From the NCBI GenBank assembly GCA_965113315.1, contig OZ220365.1: a DNA stretch of 64,000 bases, one strand, 5' to 3'. Source of the DNA: Podarcis vaucheri (Eukaryota). Each line of letters opens with the position of its first letter. Within the stretch, counting starts at the first letter, position 1. Below are positions 3,140-21,330 of the stretch, piece by piece. Both the position numbers and the translations under genes were made by a program. The notes below the pieces were generated by a model. The model made no database searches and was not told where the DNA came from. It saw only the letters and a program-made list of their open reading frames with translations.

Positions 3140-3389
3140 TTATATTCATCACCAGGTCTCCAGTGGAAGGATAGTGTAACCTTTCCGCAAAGTCCCGGCA
3201 ATACCACACAAGCAATTCCTGGCCAGGTGGTATGGGTTTGATAGTATAAAAGTAGACATCCATTCCATTCTGACAAGCAGCCAGGTTCTGCTCCTGAACA
3301 GAATGTGCTGGGTTTACATAACGCATCCAATTACTCTTTTCCTCATTAAATCCATCAATGAAGTGGAGAAGTTCACCACCAGAATATAT
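3140..3389 (-). CDS. PRDM1: PRDM1 exon 4 (C-terminal half of the PR/SET domain)
   Basis: ctgcag|ATA acceptor and A|gtaagt donor; 250 nt; encodes [74 protein letters not shown]..., including the PR-domain motifs NWMRYVNPA and ELLVWY. Confidence 0.98.
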
Positions 3390-6197
3390 CTGCAGAGAAT
3401 GGAAGATAGAAATGTAAGGTATAAATGGAAAAGAACCCTTTTTTTAAAAAAAAGGCAACGAAATATACTAGTGGATGGTAAGTACCCTTTAGAGACTGTA
3501 GGAGATGATCCAAATGGAATATGCTTTGTAACTTTTTTCTGATGCCATGTGTATTTTGATGCTTAGCATTCAAATGAAAGCATACTACTTAAAAGTTCAG
3601 TATTCAGTGCCTCTGCTTTAAGACTCTTGGACTGCTGGTCAACAAGTGGGTGGTATTATTGAATTAAGGTCTGACTGTGTGCTTGCAATAATGTGGTGAG
3701 TCACTTTTGTAAAGACTGATTAGCATGGTTATGTCACAACCAATTCCTTGCCCTTGTCTTCCCGCCCCCCCCATGGCCTCTTTACTTGCTGTTTCCTACC
3801 ACCACCACCCAAAGCTTTAAGCTACGCAAATATCAACCACCCCAAAGTCCTAAAATGACACTTGAGCATACTTGGAATGTAGCCCTTTTGTTAAAGGACT
3901 GGTGGGGTAAAGTGAACTGTATTTTGTATAACTAACTGGAGATCTGGAAGGGGGCCAGATTGTGACAGTAAGAGAAATACTTTTCTCTCTCAGCTAGTAT
4001 GTTTGAGAAAATATAACTCTACAGCATGTGACGGAAGAACAAATAATGTACTGATTCAATATATCCTTGTTTTCCAGTGTGCATCTGAGAATATGAAAGT
4101 GAATATAGAAAACTCCTGACAAAGCTGTACCTGTAGACTGTAGTGTAGCCTTGCTTTCAGTTTACCACTGAAACTATGGCACAGTTAACTATAGTTAACT
4201 GGTAACTATAAGGTTGTGAGGTTTCTTAAAAAAAAGTTTCACAAGTCATCATGTTCAAATAGGAAATATTTGTTTTTTCCCTCTTTCCTGCCTTGTTCCA
4301 AAGGGCTCTGGGCCAGTGACAATATGCATCCCTGTTTCGTTTTACTTAAAAATAAAATCCCCATGAAGTTAGTGCCATAGATTAGTGTAATGGCTGGGAT
4401 AGAATTTCAGTTTGGCTTTCCCATGTCCGAATGCAATGTTGCACCATTTCCCTGTGCTTTTTGACATGCACGTTCAATTTCTTCTGAATGCTGTTTGATG
4501 TAAGAATCGACTGAGAAGTCATTAAAAAAAAAAGCAGCAACAAAAGCTGGCCTTTTAACACAGGCAGTAAACACCAGAATCACTTTCTTACTTCCTGTCA
4601 TTTGAGGCTGAGGAAATACATGTGGCTTCATCAAAGAAGCTTGAGAGATTTTGCGGTGTTTTTGTTATGAGAAAGATGGAACAAAGCCTGAAGAATTATG
4701 CACTCAAGAGGAGTTTGTTAGCTCCGATTTGCAAGCTTCCAGGAACTGAGTTCCATTGATGTACACTTCTATTACAGATAGAAACTACTTTCCGAAGTTA
4801 GACCAAGTGACTTCCAGTCATCTTTCCAGAGCTAGTAGAATTTACTGTATTGCTTTCTTCAAAACACACACATCTCACTGCTGTAAGATCAAATCGCCTC
4901 ATAAAACTTTATTTTGCCACCTCACCAGATTTCCGTGTATCGTGTGGAAGATTAAAAATGTGCTGAGTCATACTGTAGCAATTACAAGAAATGACATCAC
5001 CCTGGAGTTTGCACAGCATATTCATGCCTTCTCTTTTTAGTGGGTATATTTTGAATGGAACATTTATGCTTACATACAACAGATGTTCCTGTTCCTGCCA
5101 GCCAAATCAGGATGTCTTTTATATGACATGTGGGAAATTATCTTCCACAATTTCCTTTGCATGTGCAAGGCTGTTTTCAGGCCCTTAGGAAAGAACCTTT
5201 TCTACTTGGAGAGTGTGTGAAGCAAAAGAATAAACAAAAGTAAATACCAAGACTTTTCAGAAGGCACATAACACAAGCATGATGTTAGCTTCCTCAATGA
5301 AAGTCTGGAATAACATCCTGTTGCATAGTCAGAATCCTCTTGTAAGATTTGTTTAATTACTTAAATGTGCTAATGACTAGTCTGAAAGCATGCATGCTTC
5401 TAGGGTGAGGCCAAGATATTTTCCTGCCTGAGATGAAGGAAAAAATGGCACCCTACTCCATTCCATGTACTGATGCATGGCATACAAAAGTCTACCCTTC
5501 AACACCTCACCACTGCTCTCTGCCCCTTAGCAATTGCTGCCTTACTCTGTCTAATGGTAGGGCCAGCCCTGAACCTTTCTTTAGTTCTCCCGATGTGAGT
5601 ACTGAAAAGACTTGATGACAGATGCCAACTGGCATCTCGCAGAGCAGGAGATTCCTTAAAGTGTGTTTTATTGAAAAAATACTAATGGTTAAGGAGAACA
5701 GAGAATCAAGTCACACTTGTTTCTATTGAATCATTAAGATGTAACAAAGGAAAACATGGAAACAATGTTTAAACGGCCACCTTTCAGAATGACATGTGAT
5801 GTTGGAATGATCTGATACGTGGCAAACACTCAGATGCAGCAGGACAGTTTCCTGCTACCGCCACACAAAGGTTTAAGCTATGCAACTATCCCCCACCCTG
5901 AATCCTAAATTAAAACTTATTTGTACTTGGAATGCAGCCCTTTTGTTGAAGGATTGGGTTGGGTAAAGTGGATTGCAGTTGGTATACTTTAGTAAGCCTC
6001 TAGCATGGAAGAAACCTGACAGCTTTGACATTAGACACTCGTGTCTTCGGAAATTTTCTTCCTGCAGCCTTTAAAAAAAAGAATGATGTGTGTTGTTGTT
6101 GTTGTTTTTAAGCTAAATTCTTTTTATAATATTTATTGCGCTAAGAAGTGACATCTTGCCTAAGGCATTACAGAGGCACATATCTGTTATTTTAGCC

Positions 6198-7044: not shown

Positions 7045-7164
7045 CCGCCAAAAGTATTTTCTGTTTGCATCCTTAGGAACTGTGCCATTGGTATAGATTT
7101 CACCAACCAGGGGTCCAAAGCGTGTTCCTTTAGGGATAATGTCTTTGCTTATAACTCCAATAAC
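7045..7164 (-). CDS. PRDM1: PRDM1 exon 3 (PR domain)
   Basis: tttcag|GTT acceptor and CGG|gtaagt donor; 120 nt, phase 0-0; [40 protein letters not shown]. Absent from the ORF track. Confidence 0.98.
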
Positions 7165-7889
7165 CTGAAAGGAAAAGAGCACATGTCAAACCATTTAAAT
7201 AAGTTTATGCGTTCACACAGGAAAAACAGTTTGATACAAAAGTTATTACATTGTTATTACAGGGAAGCAGTCAATGTAAAGGCAAGGGATCCCCCACCCT
7301 CCTTTGTCTCTAGAGTGGCATTTATCTCAGCACTTGGTGATGTTGCAAAACTATAATCTTTTGGAAATAACACATACCAAAAAGCATTGCAAAGCTGAGT
7401 AGAATTTGTTTATCTGTTTCTGTGATCACCTGACAGTATGACTGGCTCACTCTCAAAGATCTTATAGGTGAACGAACTATAAAAGTGGCCTTAGGAGATT
7501 AGAGAGAGAGAAAGCTGAGAAACACTAGTGACCAATGGTCTAACTGCCTGATTTTTGCATGGAAGAAATGAACTCAGAACTTGAATGTGACATTGAGATG
7601 CAATTATCACATGCTATAATACCCATTAAAAAGTGAAATTTCTGTGGAGAAATAGAGACCAGTAAAGCCTGCAGACATGACATTTGAAATCTACCTTGCT
7701 AGTTACATATTTATGTTTATAATCCTGGAATTCTGATGACACCCAGCCCTGTTTCTCTGTTAATTTAAGTCAGGTGTCACAGTGCAGGTCCTGAACCAGT
7801 TCTTGGATGCGTTGGTGGGCGGGATGAGGGCCAATAAAAGCTGGAGTGGAATCCTAACAAGATGGAGGCTCTGCAGGTGAGTGGTTCAT

Positions 7890-13920: not shown

Positions 13921-16622
13921 GATTTAGGAGTAGTTGCAACACAGATCATATGTCCAACAATTTATCCAATTTCACTTGAATTATTTAGCTGTGATCAAAC
14001 AGCCGAATATACCTTACAATGAATGTTCCTATATAGATAAACAAAGCCTCAAAAAATAAGAACTGAAGTCAATCACTTTAAAATGATACCACTACATAAT
14101 CTCCAAGTATTTGACAAGCCTTCATGGAAAGGTTAGTAAAAAAATACAATCCAAGCACATGCATGTGCACATACACAACACAGGTGTATCTCGGAACATT
14201 ACTCTAACTACAGATGTTAATGACAGCATTAATATTTCATAAGCATGTTTTTCTCCATTAAATCAGCTCACTACTTACATAATTACATGAGGTGATATTT
14301 GAGTAATCTCTCAAAAATATTATGACAGAGAATGATTATTTGTGCAAATTGAGCCTACCAAAATCTACCAAAAGCTTTGTTTAGCCCGTATAAAAGATGC
14401 TGTTCTCCAACCATTTCTTTGTAAATGAGGAGTAAGTATTAGATTTATTGAGTTATATTGGCATTATTCTTGAAAGCAGAGCAGGTATCTCTTATTTTGT
14501 TTTCCATTAATGAATCAGCTGAAATCCAGACCAGAAAACAGATTATTGGATTTTGATCTGGGGCTAGCCACAAGATTGGGCAACTCACCATCTCTTGATC
14601 TTAGCCCCCCCACCCCACCCTGCCGATCAAATGACAATTATGAGAATGTGAAAAGGAACACGGTAAAGGCCCCAAACATAGTTAAATCTGTGGCAGGACA
14701 TAATGAAGAAAGTTACAGATATCTCAATTCTAAAGGGAGTGTGAGGGGCATGGAATCAAGGAAGAATAAGTATTTCCTTCTGCTAACTTTTCACTTGACA
14801 AAGGAGACTATAATGAAATCAAATGAGGATACTGGCTATCCAGATTCCTTAGAAGAATCCAGATAAGTAGTTAATTATGAGAAACAACCACAAACATTTC
14901 AAGAACTTAAAGTACTGTTCAAAACAGCCTTGGCAGTAGTTCCAGACCTGTGTGTAGTAAGACAGATGTAACCCAGTATTCTCAGAGTTCAGTGTATATA
15001 AAAGAGTAAACGGGAGCTGGACTTCCTATTCCCTACAGCAAACCACCAGAGCCCAAAAAGCTCTACTGAGGATTAGGAGCCTCTGCTGAATGGATTACAG
15101 GGGAAGGGGGACCCCCCCCAATCATGCCATGGTACCTTCCATAAGTGGAACTCCCACAGGTGGAAGGTGCTTCTGCCTCATTTTGGGGGACCCCCCTTCT
15201 CCCACAGTCCATCCCACTCAGCAGAGGCTCAGACCTCTTGGTGAAGCATGTTTGGGGGCAGGGGGTGGGTTGCAACGGCAAGCAGGAATGTCAGCTAGCT
15301 CTGTGCTTAACTCTGGATCCAATCCATTATTTACACATATTCATGTTTGCCAATACAAAGCCAGCAATTTTAAAAAAGTTTTTTCAGCCAGCTTGTGATG
15401 TGGCAAAGAAGATCAAACCAAGCAAGCGAGGCCACCCTAGCACAGAAAAATGATGTTAGCTGCTTCCTACATATTAGCTGATGTTCAGGCTGATCAATTA
15501 AGTGCCATTTGTCAACAGTTTCACAGTATCCCCACCTAAGTCATGTGCATGGTATATACTAGGTACATTTTAAAGCTTCTAATTCTGTTTCTCATAGCTA
15601 ATCATTTAATTGGGCTATATGGGAGTGTGAAATAATGCAAGTCCATAGAGATAACTAGCCTATTACAAGTTTCCTGGTCATTCCCCAAAACTGTGACATC
15701 CGGATCCAGTTTATATCAGTTGAAGTTCTGGTCCCCTTTCTACATGCAAGCCTTTCCATGTTGTTTGTTGTAGGAGGATACATTTAATAACTAGAAAGGA
15801 ATGAATTTACACCCTCCCTTAGCTCCGTGGTCAGTTTATTTAGCCACAGTAGCAGCACAGGTTATAGCTGTTCCACCACAAGTTGCAGGACAGGGACAAA
15901 AATGATGGGCCGTCCCTACCATTATTAACTAGCTGAACTTCACGCCTAGCTATAATAGCTACTCTATATGAAGGAATAAACAGGCAACCAATTGCTCATC
16001 CGGGATAATTTTTTCCAGCCCTTCTGAAACAACAACAAAGAATGTACCCACTCCAGAGACATGGACTGAAATATACCTGTGCGTCCAGCTACAAATAAAG
16101 GTGCACTGCCCTAGATAAACAAGTCACATAAATACAGGCTACTTATTTAATGACCTGGCCTTAACATCATCCTTTCTTCTTGGAACCCTATAAAGAACTG
16201 ATACAATAAGCCTATTAAAAAAACACACCTTTGTCTAATAATTCAAGGAAAAGCAACCCATTTCAATGCAACCATAGTATTTCACTACCTGATCCAGGAG
16301 TAGAGAATATTGTTCTCTCCTACAGATAGGTATGCTTAGAACCCGAATCTACAATACAATCTTTAGAAATTTCCATTCCTAAATTAAGTAACATTCTTGT
16401 CTATTTAGCAACACAGACATAAGTCGATTTATGCCAGTTTGGAGATGTTTGTGCTTTCCTGTGCAGAAGGTATTTTCTCCAGGTGCATTTCTAGGGGTGA
16501 ACCTTGGAAAGCCGTGGCACCCAAACATTAGAGAGTGTAGAAATCAAGAAGACAAACCCACTTCCAAGAACAATGTGATCTGGCTACCAGGTTTGAATCA
16601 TCCTTTGCAAACATGTTCTTAC

Positions 16623-16805
16623 CTCTTTGCCATGTCCTGCATATTTGAAAATCAAGTTCCTTGGCAAGGAAGACTCAGCCTGGGTTACATTGCAGCCTTC
16701 TGTGCTGGGCTCCGTGGGGTGATCATTTACAATGTAGGTACACTTGTCTTCAAATTCAGCCTCTGTCCATAGAGTCATGTCAGCATCCTTCATGTCCATT
16801 TTCAT
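16623..16805 (-). CDS. PRDM1: PRDM1 exon 2, coding part from the MKMDM start
   Basis: ATG at 16805 (A at -3); 61 codons [30 protein letters not shown]...[19 protein letters not shown]; GAG|gtaaga donor. Two in-frame TGAs lie just upstream, so this is the first usable ATG of the main frame. The whole exon is 16623-16872 (ttttccag|GCTGCC acceptor). Confidence 0.96.
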
Positions 16806-16841
16806 TATCAACTCTGGTCCTTTTCTTCACTGCTCTGGGAT

Positions 16842-18485
16842 TCACAATATACGAGCTACACAGTGTGGCAGCCTGGAAAAGAAAAGAAAATTTACTTCCC
16901 ATTCCTTTCTCAGCACCTCTAGCATTGTGACCTAAATGCTGTCTATTGGCAATTAGATGGCATTAGTGGGATAGCTGAGGACTGACACCATATACCCTAT
17001 ACCCTATAAATTGAGCTGCCTTCTTTGAAGGAATGCTTTCAAGAGCTGGGGCTGGTAAAAATAACAAAGTCACAAAAAGTAATAGGAAAAGCATGTCTGA
17101 GAACAGCACCTGTGCACACCTCTTTAGAACCTTCCCTCAGTATCTGAACAGTAGGGGTGGGGGGATGAATCTGCAGATTCAAGGCTTTGTGTGCAAAAGA
17201 GCCTGTGGAAAAGCTGCCTTGGAAAAGTGTCATAAACAAGGAAAGGAAAAGGAAGGAACTGCTGTCTGCGTCTGAATGGGCTAAAAATGGAAAGTGCACG
17301 TTGGACGAGCGGAACACAGGCTTGCCTTTTCCAAATGGGGAAGGCTGAACTTTCCCACCGGCTTCTAACACACAAACAACTTTCAAAAACAACGCTCCCC
17401 TCCCCTCTATTGACATCCTCTTATCCTCTGACACACAGACAGCTGAGGGAGACTGTATCCTACCAACATCAGTCTGAAAACAGCCAGTCTGAAATAACTA
17501 GAAATATCCACTTGGATCAGAAAGAGACAAAAATACAGTAGTATTGTTTTCTGTGCCTTCCAACAGAATTAAATACAAAGTGCAAAATCTACCATCAATA
17601 CAGGGATTGAACTGCATTAGATATGCTGTATGGCATTGGCTCACTATTTCAAACCTCAGCCATGTACTCTCTTTCCACAGGCAAGCCTCCCCTCTGCTTC
17701 AGTTTCCCATCTACAATATCAGGAAAATATTTTTTTAGGGCTCCTATAATTGTTAGCACATACTATTTGTGTTCTACTCTCATTCAGAAAAGAACATATT
17801 TTAAAAGAAGCGGAGTAATAGTATTCTGTGGAAAAACTAAATATCTGAAGAACACACTTACAGAATTAAGTTTTACTTACCCATTAAAAAGATAATGTTA
17901 ACATATCATTTTGTTTCCCCAGGTATAAAGTTACTGGATTAAACTACAGCATTTTCCAAAACAAAGGCTTTAGGCTCCAGCATTGTACTGCTAATCCTAC
18001 CAGAGATTTTCATTTGTATCTGAGTAAAGCAGGGTCATATTTCCAACTCAAAGAAGTGTTTTTCAGAAGATGAAGTGTTTGGAAGAACACAGTTGTCAAC
18101 TTAATTCCACACTTCCTCACAGCATTGAGCAGATTTAATAGTTCTTCATACGGTGCTTTTAATGGGCTTGATGAGATCAAACCCTAGTACAATCTGAACA
18201 ATACCTTTACCACTTTGTAGGCTATGACAAGAGAACTAATACTGAAACTCCGTGAACCGGCAGTTGCCACTAGCAGTGAAAGAATTAATCATCATAAAAA
18301 CAAAGGTCTCTCGAACTTAAAGAGAAAGTCTCCAAGGAGAACCTTAACAGGTTTGCCGTCTCCATTCAAAAGAGTGCTAAAATCATCTGTCTCCCGGACA
18401 GGAGTAGGAAGAAAATTTCTTACCAAGGTACAGTCCACAAATAATTCCAGCTGGCAGCGCGACGTTTCAGGTAAGTCTCACACAT
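16842..18485 (-). other. Spliced uORF2, join(18485-18424,16872-16842), 30 aa MCETYLKRRAASWNYLWTVPWLPHCVARIL*
   Basis: ATG at 18485; 62 nt in exon 1 plus 31 nt in exon 2; TGA ends at 16842, 36 nt before the main ATG. Translation itself is not demonstrated. Confidence 0.75.
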
Positions 18486-18670
18486 ATCTACAGAGTAAAC
18501 ATTACTTCTTCCACTGGCCGGGTTCAAGTAATACCAATAGAGCTAGCTTCTTTTGCTTCTGCCTCTGTCTTTACTGTCAGACAGGTGCTGCTGCACTTAC
18601 TGCTTCAACTTCTTTGAAACACTGGAGGGCTGAATGTTACGATACTTTCAGTCTGTGTTAACTAAACAGA
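18424..18670 (-). other. PRDM1: PRDM1 exon 1 (5' leader); 5' end approximate
   Basis: Donor ACCTTG|gtaaga at 18424/18423. Minus-strand GTTAACACAGAC...GCCCTCCAGTGTT near 18618-18662 resembles the start of the human PRDM1 mRNA as I recall it. The TSS is inferred. Confidence 0.85.
18488..18502 (-). other. uORF1 in the PRDM1 leader (MFTL*)
   Basis: ATG TTT ACT CTG TAG; the first ATG downstream of the inferred TSS. Confidence 0.75.
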
Positions 18671-18830
18671 CTCTTCCTTTCTCCTCCCTGTTTCAGGTTT
18701 CCTATTAGCCACTCATCTGATTTACTCACAGTCACGGCTGCCAAGAGCAGGGGGTGGGGCTATACCTGTAACTCACACAGGTATATCCAATGAAACTCTG
18801 ATCCAGTCAGAAGGAATTTTTCCTTTCAGC
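18660..18830 (-). promoter_or_regulatory. PRDM1 proximal promoter (candidate; no clear TATA box)
   Basis: Directly upstream of exon 1; SP/KLF box GGGGGTGGGGC at 18750-18760, CCAAT at 18787-18791, kappaB-like GGAATTTTTCC at 18813-18823. Confidence 0.65.
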
Positions 18831-21330
18831 AGATCACACCAATACAGTTTTTCCTGTTAACACGTATGCCTGCTAACATTCTACTGGCATCCAGCTTAAC
18901 TCACATGCAAAAGGACAAACATTTGGTGGTGTAACACTAGAAACTATGACCTAGTGCTTAAATCTGTTCATTTTAACTGGGCATTTTTTGAACAAACATG
19001 CTTACAATTTCCAAAAAAAAAGTATTTACAACAATATTGTTCTCCAGGTTGCATATTTTCTTACAGTTCTGAGTAGTTTTATATTTTACAAGGTAATCTT
19101 ACACATGTCTACTGAAAAGTAAGCCCCACTGGGTCCAGCAGGACTTGCTCCAAGGTAAGTGAATGTAAGATTTCAGCCTTAACTTTGCACTATTTTAAAA
19201 GTGCATCATTTCAAAGTGGAAACTAAGCCTGTCCCTGCTTTAAGAGAGAATGGGTCATATGCTAACAGAAAGAAAAGTTCCATCAGTGATGCTTTCATTA
19301 GACACAATCACTTAAAGAGCATGTTGCTGATCAAATAAGTATTGGTGTGAATATAATTAAGAGGAACATGTGCTGTTTCTTTTTCCTCCTCTCCCTGTTA
19401 GTGAATTGCCTTGAAGGAAGGACATCCTGTGATGATGGCATACAGTGTCCTGTTTGTTTATTATTGAGCGCACAGACCTTGCATTCCTATTTCTCATTAC
19501 CAAACAAACCAGATGCCTAACTTCCTTCAGTGGTCCTTGTCCTTCATTGAGGAATCCTTCAGCTTACAACAGTTATGATGATGCATCCTTCCAATTATAG
19601 TCACTCACAATATTACAAACATCACCCAGTCAGTTCACCAAAGGACAAGTCTCCTACTTTTCCTTTTTACATCACATCAGCAGACATGTTTTTTTTATTA
19701 TTATTATCATGCCTTTCCTCTTGCGTGGGCAGAAACTTGTTTTGACTTGCTATAAAAATGCAAAACACAACTACCTGTCTATATGGAAATCTGCATTGTT
19801 CGAAGAAATGTCCATTCTGTCTGATGCATACACCATACCATCACCCTCCTGAAGTTCTTACAGAAGAAGGTGAAAGGGATTATATGTCATTCTAGGTGAC
19901 GCAGTACTGAGAATAGTACATATCTGTGTAAAGACCTTTGGCATCTTCTAATAGAGAAGTACTCATACCGTTGGACATAAGTAGGACAACAGCGCCAAAC
20001 AAGTGTCCTGGCTTAACTGTTACTGGTACGTAATTCCACAAGAAAGGTGGTAAGGGCATCATGCTGATGGGTATAAAGGTAATTGGATATGCAGTAGGAA
20101 GAAACATTTGTTTAAAGCAAAGAAATCTGGCCACCTTGACTTGGGTAATTAACTGATGCTGAGATAGAATCAGAGGACTATTAACAACAATAGAGGCTAC
20201 TTAAAAACATACTCAGCATTGACATAGTAAGTCTGTGGCCTATAGATATATGGTAACCCACACACCAACACATTCCTGTAGCTACTCAGAAATACATTGA
20301 TTTGGGGAGGGATCTTCATAACCTCAGCTTTATCACATGGCTGGAAGTTACAGATGGCTAGCTCTCCAAATCAGGAGTATAAATTAAAATGACCACCCCA
20401 CAGCTAATGGTTGTCTCTTTTCATTCAGGGTGGCCAGAGATCAGTTTCTGTCTATTGCTCCCATAACATCTGTGGGAACAAATCATGTAAATCATGTGAC
20501 TGACATGGTTTCTTCCCACCATGTCACTGTCCTACAGTGATGGGCAACCTCAGATATCCATGGCAACTGACATGACAGCTTCCTATAAATGTTACTGCTA
20601 ATAAGCAACAGAACTTGTCCTACAGAAGCAGTGAACATGCAACTCATGTAACATGAAGTGGCCTGAGTCACTTCACATGGAGTGGAAAAACAATGTAGTC
20701 ATACTGAAGCTGTCTACCCCACCCACTATACCAAGATATAAGTCTCACTTTGACATGGATATGTCTCAGAGCTTTCTAGGTCCCTGGTAATTTAAAAATA
20801 AAAAGAAATTACAAAAACAAAATTATTAACAAACAACTTTTTAACGCAGGCTTTTTCTTGCCCCATCACTAAAAAAGAATGGTGATTCTTCTTGCCTATC
20901 ATGAAATAGCTATTTTGCTTTTCATTTGATTGAAACAATGACAGTGGGCGTTGGAAGGCTAAACTCTGTTTGCCCACCATTGATTGTGTGGGCACTGATG
21001 ATATTCAGCAGAGTACAAAAGCGAGCTGCCGGCACAGCATTAATTACCATTGTAGAGCACAGTTGCAGTTACTGCTCCTATGCACATACCTGCGTTACAC
21101 TAGGACTAAGGACACTTAGGATCCAATCTCTGTTCAGCCATTCAATATATGCTAGACTAACCTACTACAGCAGTTAAAATGCGGGTGGGAGAAAACCATG
21201 TATGCTAGTTAAAAAAATTTGAGGAAATTTTATATAAAAGGTGGAGCTCATATGTGATGCCGCAATGAAAAATGAGATATACCACTTCCCCCTGCCCCTT
21301 TTGCCTTGTGATTGCATTGTCATCAGTGTA

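Follow-up and report, generated by a model that had tools for sequence, protein, structure and literature searches.

Two upstream open reading frames in the PRDM1 leader of Podarcis vaucheri and their overlap with an N-terminal coding frame

The PRDM1 leader and its two upstream open reading frames

The dosage of PRDM1 (Blimp-1) decides the fates of plasma cells, T cells, natural killer (NK) cells and germ cells. The 5' leader of this gene was analysed here in a 64,000-nt stretch of the genome of the lizard Podarcis vaucheri (contig OZ220365.1, referred to as the window, in whose coordinates all positions are given), where PRDM1 lies on the minus strand, as do all the leader features described below. 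The leader carries two upstream open reading frames (uORFs), and the second of them is read from the same DNA, in another frame, as the N-terminus of the long PRDM1 isoform of other tetrapods. The gene was recognised by the coding part of exon 2 (16805-16623, with the main ATG at 16805-16803 and the exon ending GAG|GTAAGA), which matches the PRDM1 chains 9q1g and 3dal in a search of the PDB (E = 1.5e-24).

The first uORF (uORF1, 18502-18488) reads ATG TTT ACT CTG TAG and encodes MFTL*, with its ATG at 18502-18500 and its TAG at 18490-18488. A 2-nt spacer (AT, 18487-18486) separates this stop from the ATG of the second uORF (uORF2) at 18485-18483. The exon 1 part of uORF2 (18485-18424, 62 nt) is composed of the ATG, 19 further codons and a final TG (18425-18424), and gives the peptide MCETYLKRRAASWNYLWTVP. 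Intron 1 (18423-16873, 1551 nt) follows, with the donor TTG|GTAAGA and an acceptor formed by a pyrimidine tract and CAG|G (CAG at 16875-16873). The exon 2 part of uORF2 (16872-16842) begins with the G at 16872, which finishes the split Trp codon, and continues with LPHCVARIL to the TGA at 16844-16842. A 36-nt spacer (16841-16806), including a second in-frame TGA at 16829-16827, then leads to the main ATG. This layout, with the split Trp codon and the 36 nt before the main start, had been given in a preliminary description of the DNA, and every letter and coordinate of it was verified, as was the G that it reported at -3 of both upstream ATGs (uATGs).

The three frames are named here by exon 2: frame b is read from its first base (GCT GCC ACA, AATLCSSYIVN), frame c is that of uORF2, and uORF1 occupies the third frame, a, distinct from both. 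In the window uORF2 shares its frame with the main open reading frame (ORF), with two stops between them, which rule out readthrough of the uORF2 stop codon into PRDM1. Each of the two AUGs lies upstream of the main start and is followed by an in-frame stop before it, as a uORF demands. Both have G at -3 and T at +4; the main PRDM1 ATG has A at both positions, and the ATG at its third codon has A at -3 and G at +4.

The exon 1-2 junction has canonical GT-AG signals, and the gene models of relatives (P0259, P0244 and P0265) join the same letters. From these signals and models, and from the depletion of ATGs in this stretch described below, the junction is presumed to be used and both uORF AUGs presumably lie inside the mature mRNA. 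Of the words sampled from 16500-19200, 22-29% in total also occur in RNA-like contig runs of a close relative, approximately what two exons would contribute. An alternative donor, ACT|GTACCT, which would place the second uATG in frame b, was rejected as a weak site, the more so as frame b is interrupted in the window anyway. Upstream of uORF1, at ~18670-18760, CCCCACCCCC forms a box resembling a GC-box, and a run rich in GAAA, GGAAACCTGAAACAGGGAGGAGAAAGGAAGAG, resembles IRF/ETS-type promoter elements.

An N-terminal coding frame of PRDM1 over the same DNA

Annotated PRDM1 N-termini were gathered across vertebrates, with the peptide of exon 2 and complete PRDM1 models as search queries. Mammalian exon 1 was found to give two protein starts. 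One of them, MS(D/E)..LRCWIF.WKNVWVRP, occurs in the gene models of camel, bat, Peromyscus and Arvicola, and the other is MLD(I/L)(C/L)LEKRVGTTL, which then continues with AAPKC.... In a dynamic-programming test the two N-termini of one species could come from a single DNA if the second started 20 nt after the first, and at no other spacing; all of 200 shuffled controls were incompatible. At the level of gene models, therefore, the mammalian counterpart of the uORF2 ATG precedes the long-isoform ATG by 20 nt and is out of frame with it.

The first of these starts is the one that corresponds to uORF2. The preliminary description had proposed that the position of uORF2 is shared with mammals, and this part of the proposal stood: camel, bat, Peromyscus, Arvicola and mouse all have this ATG at a distance of 20 codons from the donor, so that exon 1 and the uORF2 ATG are homologous between the lizard and mammals. 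The N-terminus that it gave for the long mouse isoform also agrees with the 'canonical' mouse Blimp-1 N-terminus MREAYLRCWIFSWKNVWVRP (UniProt Q60636-1, 856 aa) quoted in Table 1 of PMC4009873, which starts at the uORF2 ATG and likewise has 20 codons up to the donor. Mouse, Peromyscus and Arvicola include an additional exon that restores the frame and fuses this ATG to the protein, whereas the ORF of the window ends after 30 codons. UniProt already has both readings: the ATG with its first 20 residues belongs to the canonical N-terminus of mouse, and the canonical human N-terminus is in the other frame. Since the databases read PRDM1 exon 1 in two frames, peptide conservation in either frame should not be taken at face value. 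We take the mouse first exons to splice directly to the exon with the start codon.

The second start belongs to frame b. The frame-b reading of exon 1 in the window (18465-18424) is TSRCQLELFVDCTL, the counterpart of MPGCQLEVFVDCTL in python and of the mammalian MLDICLEKRVGTTL, which is the N-terminus of the long PRDM1 isoform (825 aa, UniProt O75626-1; mouse isoform '1A', MLDLLLEKRVGTTL). Like uORF2, this isoform is encoded by this exon 1 DNA and across this junction, and TSRCQLELFVDCTL|AATLCSSYIVN of the window is its orthologue; it differs from uORF2 in its frame and in a start 20 nt further on. The corresponding peptides are MLDFCCEKRVETAW in the frog Ascaphus, MPDLCLDRLLDSTL in newts, MLDFYLEKLVDTTL in platypus, MLDFCLEKLVDTTL in wallaby and MLDICLEKRVGTTL in camel, and the model of a near-identical relative (P0259) has the same TSRCQLELFVDCTL as the window. 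The 14 residues follow the consensus MLD.CLEK.V.TTL, with identities of 9/14 between camel and Ascaphus, 11/14 between camel and wallaby, 10/14 between the window and python, and 6/14 between the window and wallaby. A frame-b ATG 14 codons before the donor is present in Ascaphus, newts, monotremes, marsupials, placentals and python. Past the junction frame b reads AA(T/P/A/S)..., and AA.xC(S/N)S..V in most tetrapods, and it runs free of stops through ~22 codons of the next exon into MKMDM, the residues encoded from the main ATG, in fish, frogs, newts, mammals, birds, turtle, geckos, snakes and lizards. It joins MKMDM in every sampled lineage but this window, and raw genomic ORFs that read through the acceptor likewise show frame b continuous with MKMDM. 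The ray-finned fishes, which start with MCG(S/W).Q...|AASQHSS, and a neobatrachian frog transcript, which starts with MIYDCWRSVDSAW|AATQ, are in frame b as well.

Another possible start in this frame is found in the intron. An ATG at 16902-16900, 10 codons before the exon 2 acceptor, opens the frame-b reading MGSKFSFLFQ|AAT... (16902-16873), and comparable intron-proximal ATGs occur in Varanus, an iguanian, birds, turtle, lungfish and some mammals (MRIKG..F.FQ|, MGSKC.FLFQ| and MRTEAFLFFFQ|), either in models or in raw ORFs. It may be an intron-proximal start site or an artefact of gene models that take the longest ORF.

Conservation of the uORF2 peptide

The preliminary description had gone further than a shared position and suggested a conserved Trp-rich peptide serving a dedicated amniote-wide device. 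A functional 30-aa product of this kind would be either a micropeptide or a nascent chain that arrests the ribosome through W..W..PWLP. In its favour, the lizard peptide and its mammalian counterpart have Trp and Pro at matching positions, and the mouse annotation treats the first 20 residues as protein. When the shared residues from W13 to the stop were mapped on the window DNA, each of them was found to overlie frame-b codons, mostly conserved pairs. W13 lies over the frame-b pair L-E (CTG GAA), W17 over V-D (GTG GAC; V-G in placentals) and P20 over T-L; the split codon of W21 lies over L|A, L22 over A-A, P23 over A-T/P, V26 over C-S/N and L30 over I/T-V, and the uORF2 stop over V-N/K/R (GTG A..). 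These shared Trp, Pro and Leu residues and the stop are probably, for the most part, conserved frame-b pairs (L-E, V-D/G, T-L, A-A, V-N/K) read one base later. The equal length of uORF2 in the lizard and mammals follows in turn from the lack of insertions and deletions in a coding frame.

The comparison of the lizard with camel points in the same direction. The two uORF2 peptides are identical at 6 of 20 positions in exon 1, and in the overlapped part, which bears the Trp residues, the identity is 3/13 in frame c against 5/14 in frame b. Codon 11 of frame b is G, D or E across tetrapods, and the codon 18 of uORF2 deduced from it is V, T or I, K or R; as derived from the codons, change at this site would alter frame b only mildly but the uORF2 frame radically. 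Between the lizard and camel peptides no conservation of uORF2 was found beyond what the overlapping frame imposes. A protein search with the first 47 residues of P0162, of which the first 20 are the frame-c peptide, returned P0162 itself only, and in the searched papers the peptide was absent except from an isoform table. The exon 2 part that the preliminary description gave for human, LPPSVTPAL*, presumably fits the primate frame-b peptide AAPKCNSSTVRF, a fit made by codon reasoning only. Such a peptide could be likened to known uORFs with conserved peptides and to arrest peptides, such as the MAGDIS peptide of AMD1, the arginine attenuator peptide of fungi and XBP1u; uORF2 shares with them a short ORF and Trp and Pro near a possible pause site, and differs from them in that its conservation is accounted for by an overlapping coding frame. 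We consider a function of the peptide itself very improbable, and the notion of a conserved peptide device is not supported by these results.

Loss of the long-isoform start in this lizard

An exon 1 ATG in frame with MKMDM, as the long isoform needs, is present in python, newts, Ascaphus and mammals and is missing from the window. Exactly where python and mammals have their ATG, the window has ACG (18465-18463); a frame-b stop lies upstream of it at 18480-18478, and no frame-b ATG follows that stop. The window also has one base more at 16812-16815, within ACCAGAGTTG (16818-16809), than the P0259 model implies (...VKKRTKLIMKMDM). This base puts frame b out of register with PRDM1, so that it does not reach MKMDM and runs instead, in a frame other than that of the main ORF, to the TGA at 16782-16780. 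The same base incidentally brings uORF2 into frame with the main ORF. It may be genuine, as an insertion specific to this lineage, or an error of the assembly. With ACG in place of ATG and the frame broken by one base, PRDM1 of this lizard would start at MKMDM, and the upstream AUGs would act as plain uORFs.

The chance expectation for such ORFs was also calculated. The probability of no stop across 29 random codons is 0.25, and a 30-codon open frame is by itself unremarkable. The leader (18700-18424 plus 16872-16806, ~340 nt) contains 2 ATGs, as compared to 6.7 +/- 2.4 in shuffled sequences (P(<=2) = 0.03), and these two are the starts of uORF1 and uORF2; the remaining presumed exon 1 leader or promoter (18700-18503) is without any ATG. 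Real 5' leaders are typically depleted of ATGs, and it is because of this depletion that the two surviving uATGs deserve attention.

These figures bear on the possibility that the uORFs are functionless, the second AUG being a relic of a protein start used in some lineages or isoforms, such as the 856-aa form of mouse, and both ORFs being tolerated with negligible effect. uORFs are common, an open frame of this length arises readily by chance, the context of the uATGs is middling, and the frame relations differ by a single base between the window and its close relative, all of which fits a relic. On the other hand, the ATG depletion of the leader suggests selection on uATGs and yet these two remain, and the position of the ATG is common to mammals. 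We regard the relic explanation as quite improbable.

Discussion

Our results on the window and on the PRDM1 models of other vertebrates are best explained by ordinary uORFs that act as a translational brake and lie over an ancient frame-b coding extension of PRDM1, which has decayed in this lizard. We hold this explanation to be probable, if not strongly so. A modest brake is the most probable role of the uORFs as judged from their arrangement, and the upstream AUGs are presumably translated and presumably affect the PRDM1 output.

The arrangement suggests how such a brake could work. Ribosomes that initiate at the first AUG would reach its stop after 4 codons and go back to scanning. Initiator tRNA could not be reloaded within a gap of 2 nt, and these ribosomes would skip the second AUG; between uORF1 and the main AUG, however, 131 nt (64 of exon 1, 67 of exon 2) would be available for reloading. 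Ribosomes leaking past the first AUG would start at the second and synthesise the 30-aa peptide; terminating as they would only 36 nt short of the main AUG, they would reinitiate poorly. Thus uORF2 would be the brake and uORF1 a partial bypass, with PRDM1 synthesis set by the choice between the two AUGs. In mammals uORF2 would also mask the AUG of the long isoform.

Several observations weigh against this explanation. Codons 1-7 of uORF2, which lie upstream of the frame-b ATG position, keep the pattern M-x-[DE]-[TAP]-[YFC]-L-[KRQ] in the lizard and mammals. Both uATGs have been kept, as the sole ATGs of the leader, in a lizard that has no frame-b start, which fits selection on the uATGs themselves. 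High conservation of the DNA would make both frames appear conserved, and the frames were compared as peptides. Many of the frame-b N-termini are automatic gene models, which prefer the longest ORF, and the exon 1-2 junction was drawn from splice signals and the gene models of relatives.

The first two of these observations are those expected if the pair of uORFs were a selected control module, its position and length kept across amniotes to tune PRDM1 output with a peptide of no relevance, and in mammals also to govern the choice between the ATG of the long isoform and that of MKMDM. The shared ATG with its 20 codons to the donor in lizard and mammals, the persistence of the uATGs despite the loss of the overlapping frame-b start, their standing as the sole two ATGs of an ATG-poor leader, and the conservative substitutions in codons 1-7 all agree with such a module, and a 4-codon uORF, a 2-nt gap and a longer uORF suit a logic of reinitiation. 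However, the comparison covers two independent lineages, one of them a single lizard. The equal length comes with the coding frame, as described above, the shared stop needs merely GTG and a codon beginning with A, and the conservation of uORF1 is a supposition of the preliminary description. The searched literature gave no support for a PRDM1 uORF either. In our assessment a selected module is rather unlikely.

A still bolder form of the idea is that the tandem AUGs form a switch, kept by selection for more than 300 million years, which sets both the total of PRDM1 and the ratio of the long to the short isoform in most tetrapods, with uORF2 overlapping the AUG of the long isoform out of frame and ending just before the AUG of MKMDM. 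This we judge unlikely. If it were true, the retention of the AUGs after loss of the long-isoform start would show selection on the upstream AUGs and not only on the overlapping frame. A lizard with both uATGs and without the long-isoform ATG is in any case a natural test case for separating the two constraints.

Comparison with known systems also helps to delimit the kind of control that could operate here. The leaders of ATF4 and GCN4 resemble this one in that a very short uORF and then a longer one precede the coding sequence of a transcription factor linked to stress. Their uORFs are separated by tens of nucleotides, as compared to 2 nt in PRDM1, and with so short a gap the level of ternary complex cannot decide the use of uORF2; the logic is therefore not that of ATF4. 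Moreover, the inhibitory uORF of those leaders overlaps the main ORF out of frame, whereas the lizard uORF2 ends 36 nt upstream of it and in frame. The mammalian uORF2, as given by gene models, does overlap the long-isoform ATG out of frame, unlike the lizard arrangement. The uORF of C/EBP-beta steers ribosomes between alternative in-frame starts (LAP/LIP; PMC4552494), and by analogy the mammalian uORF2, which overlaps the ATG of the long isoform and ends just before that of the short one, could shift the ratio of the two isoforms. The lizard differs from C/EBP-beta in that its PRDM1 has a single protein start.

In the searched literature no description of a PRDM1/Blimp-1 uORF, of ribosome profiling (Ribo-seq) evidence for it or of the frame overlap was found, and one apparent hit for a PRDM1 uORF actually concerned PRDM15. 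If the leader acts as a brake, or directs the choice between the long and short N-terminus, it would add a layer of PRDM1 control that is absent from that literature.

Other elements of the PRDM1 locus

Later PRDM1 exons are located at ~7055-7170, ~3140-3400 and 1-640 on the minus strand. Two further stretches of the same strand resemble alternative N-termini of PRDM1. Within intron 1, the reading ...EAGGKVQPSPFGKGK at ~17320-17420 matches the N-terminal read-through AGGKVQSSPFGKGR of a capuchin PRDM1 model (18 of 34 residues identical, E = 1e-6), which in that model is followed by 'MTPG...', the alternative first exon of mammals (isoform 1C in mouse). The motifs GGGAAAGTTC and CACTTTCC occur near this stretch, which is probably a conserved alternative promoter or enhancer region, to judge by its letters. 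The second stretch, at ~5876-6070, is open and reads ...EENFRRHECLMSKLSGFFHARGLLKYTN.NPLYPTQSFNKRAAFQ, matching the N-terminus of a 728-aa PRDM1 isoform (P0260); it looks like a first exon of the PRDM1-beta type, in the intron before a later PRDM1 exon. At ~2010-2060 a GT/CA dinucleotide microsatellite gives a run of Val-Cys codons that ends a spurious minus-strand ORF.

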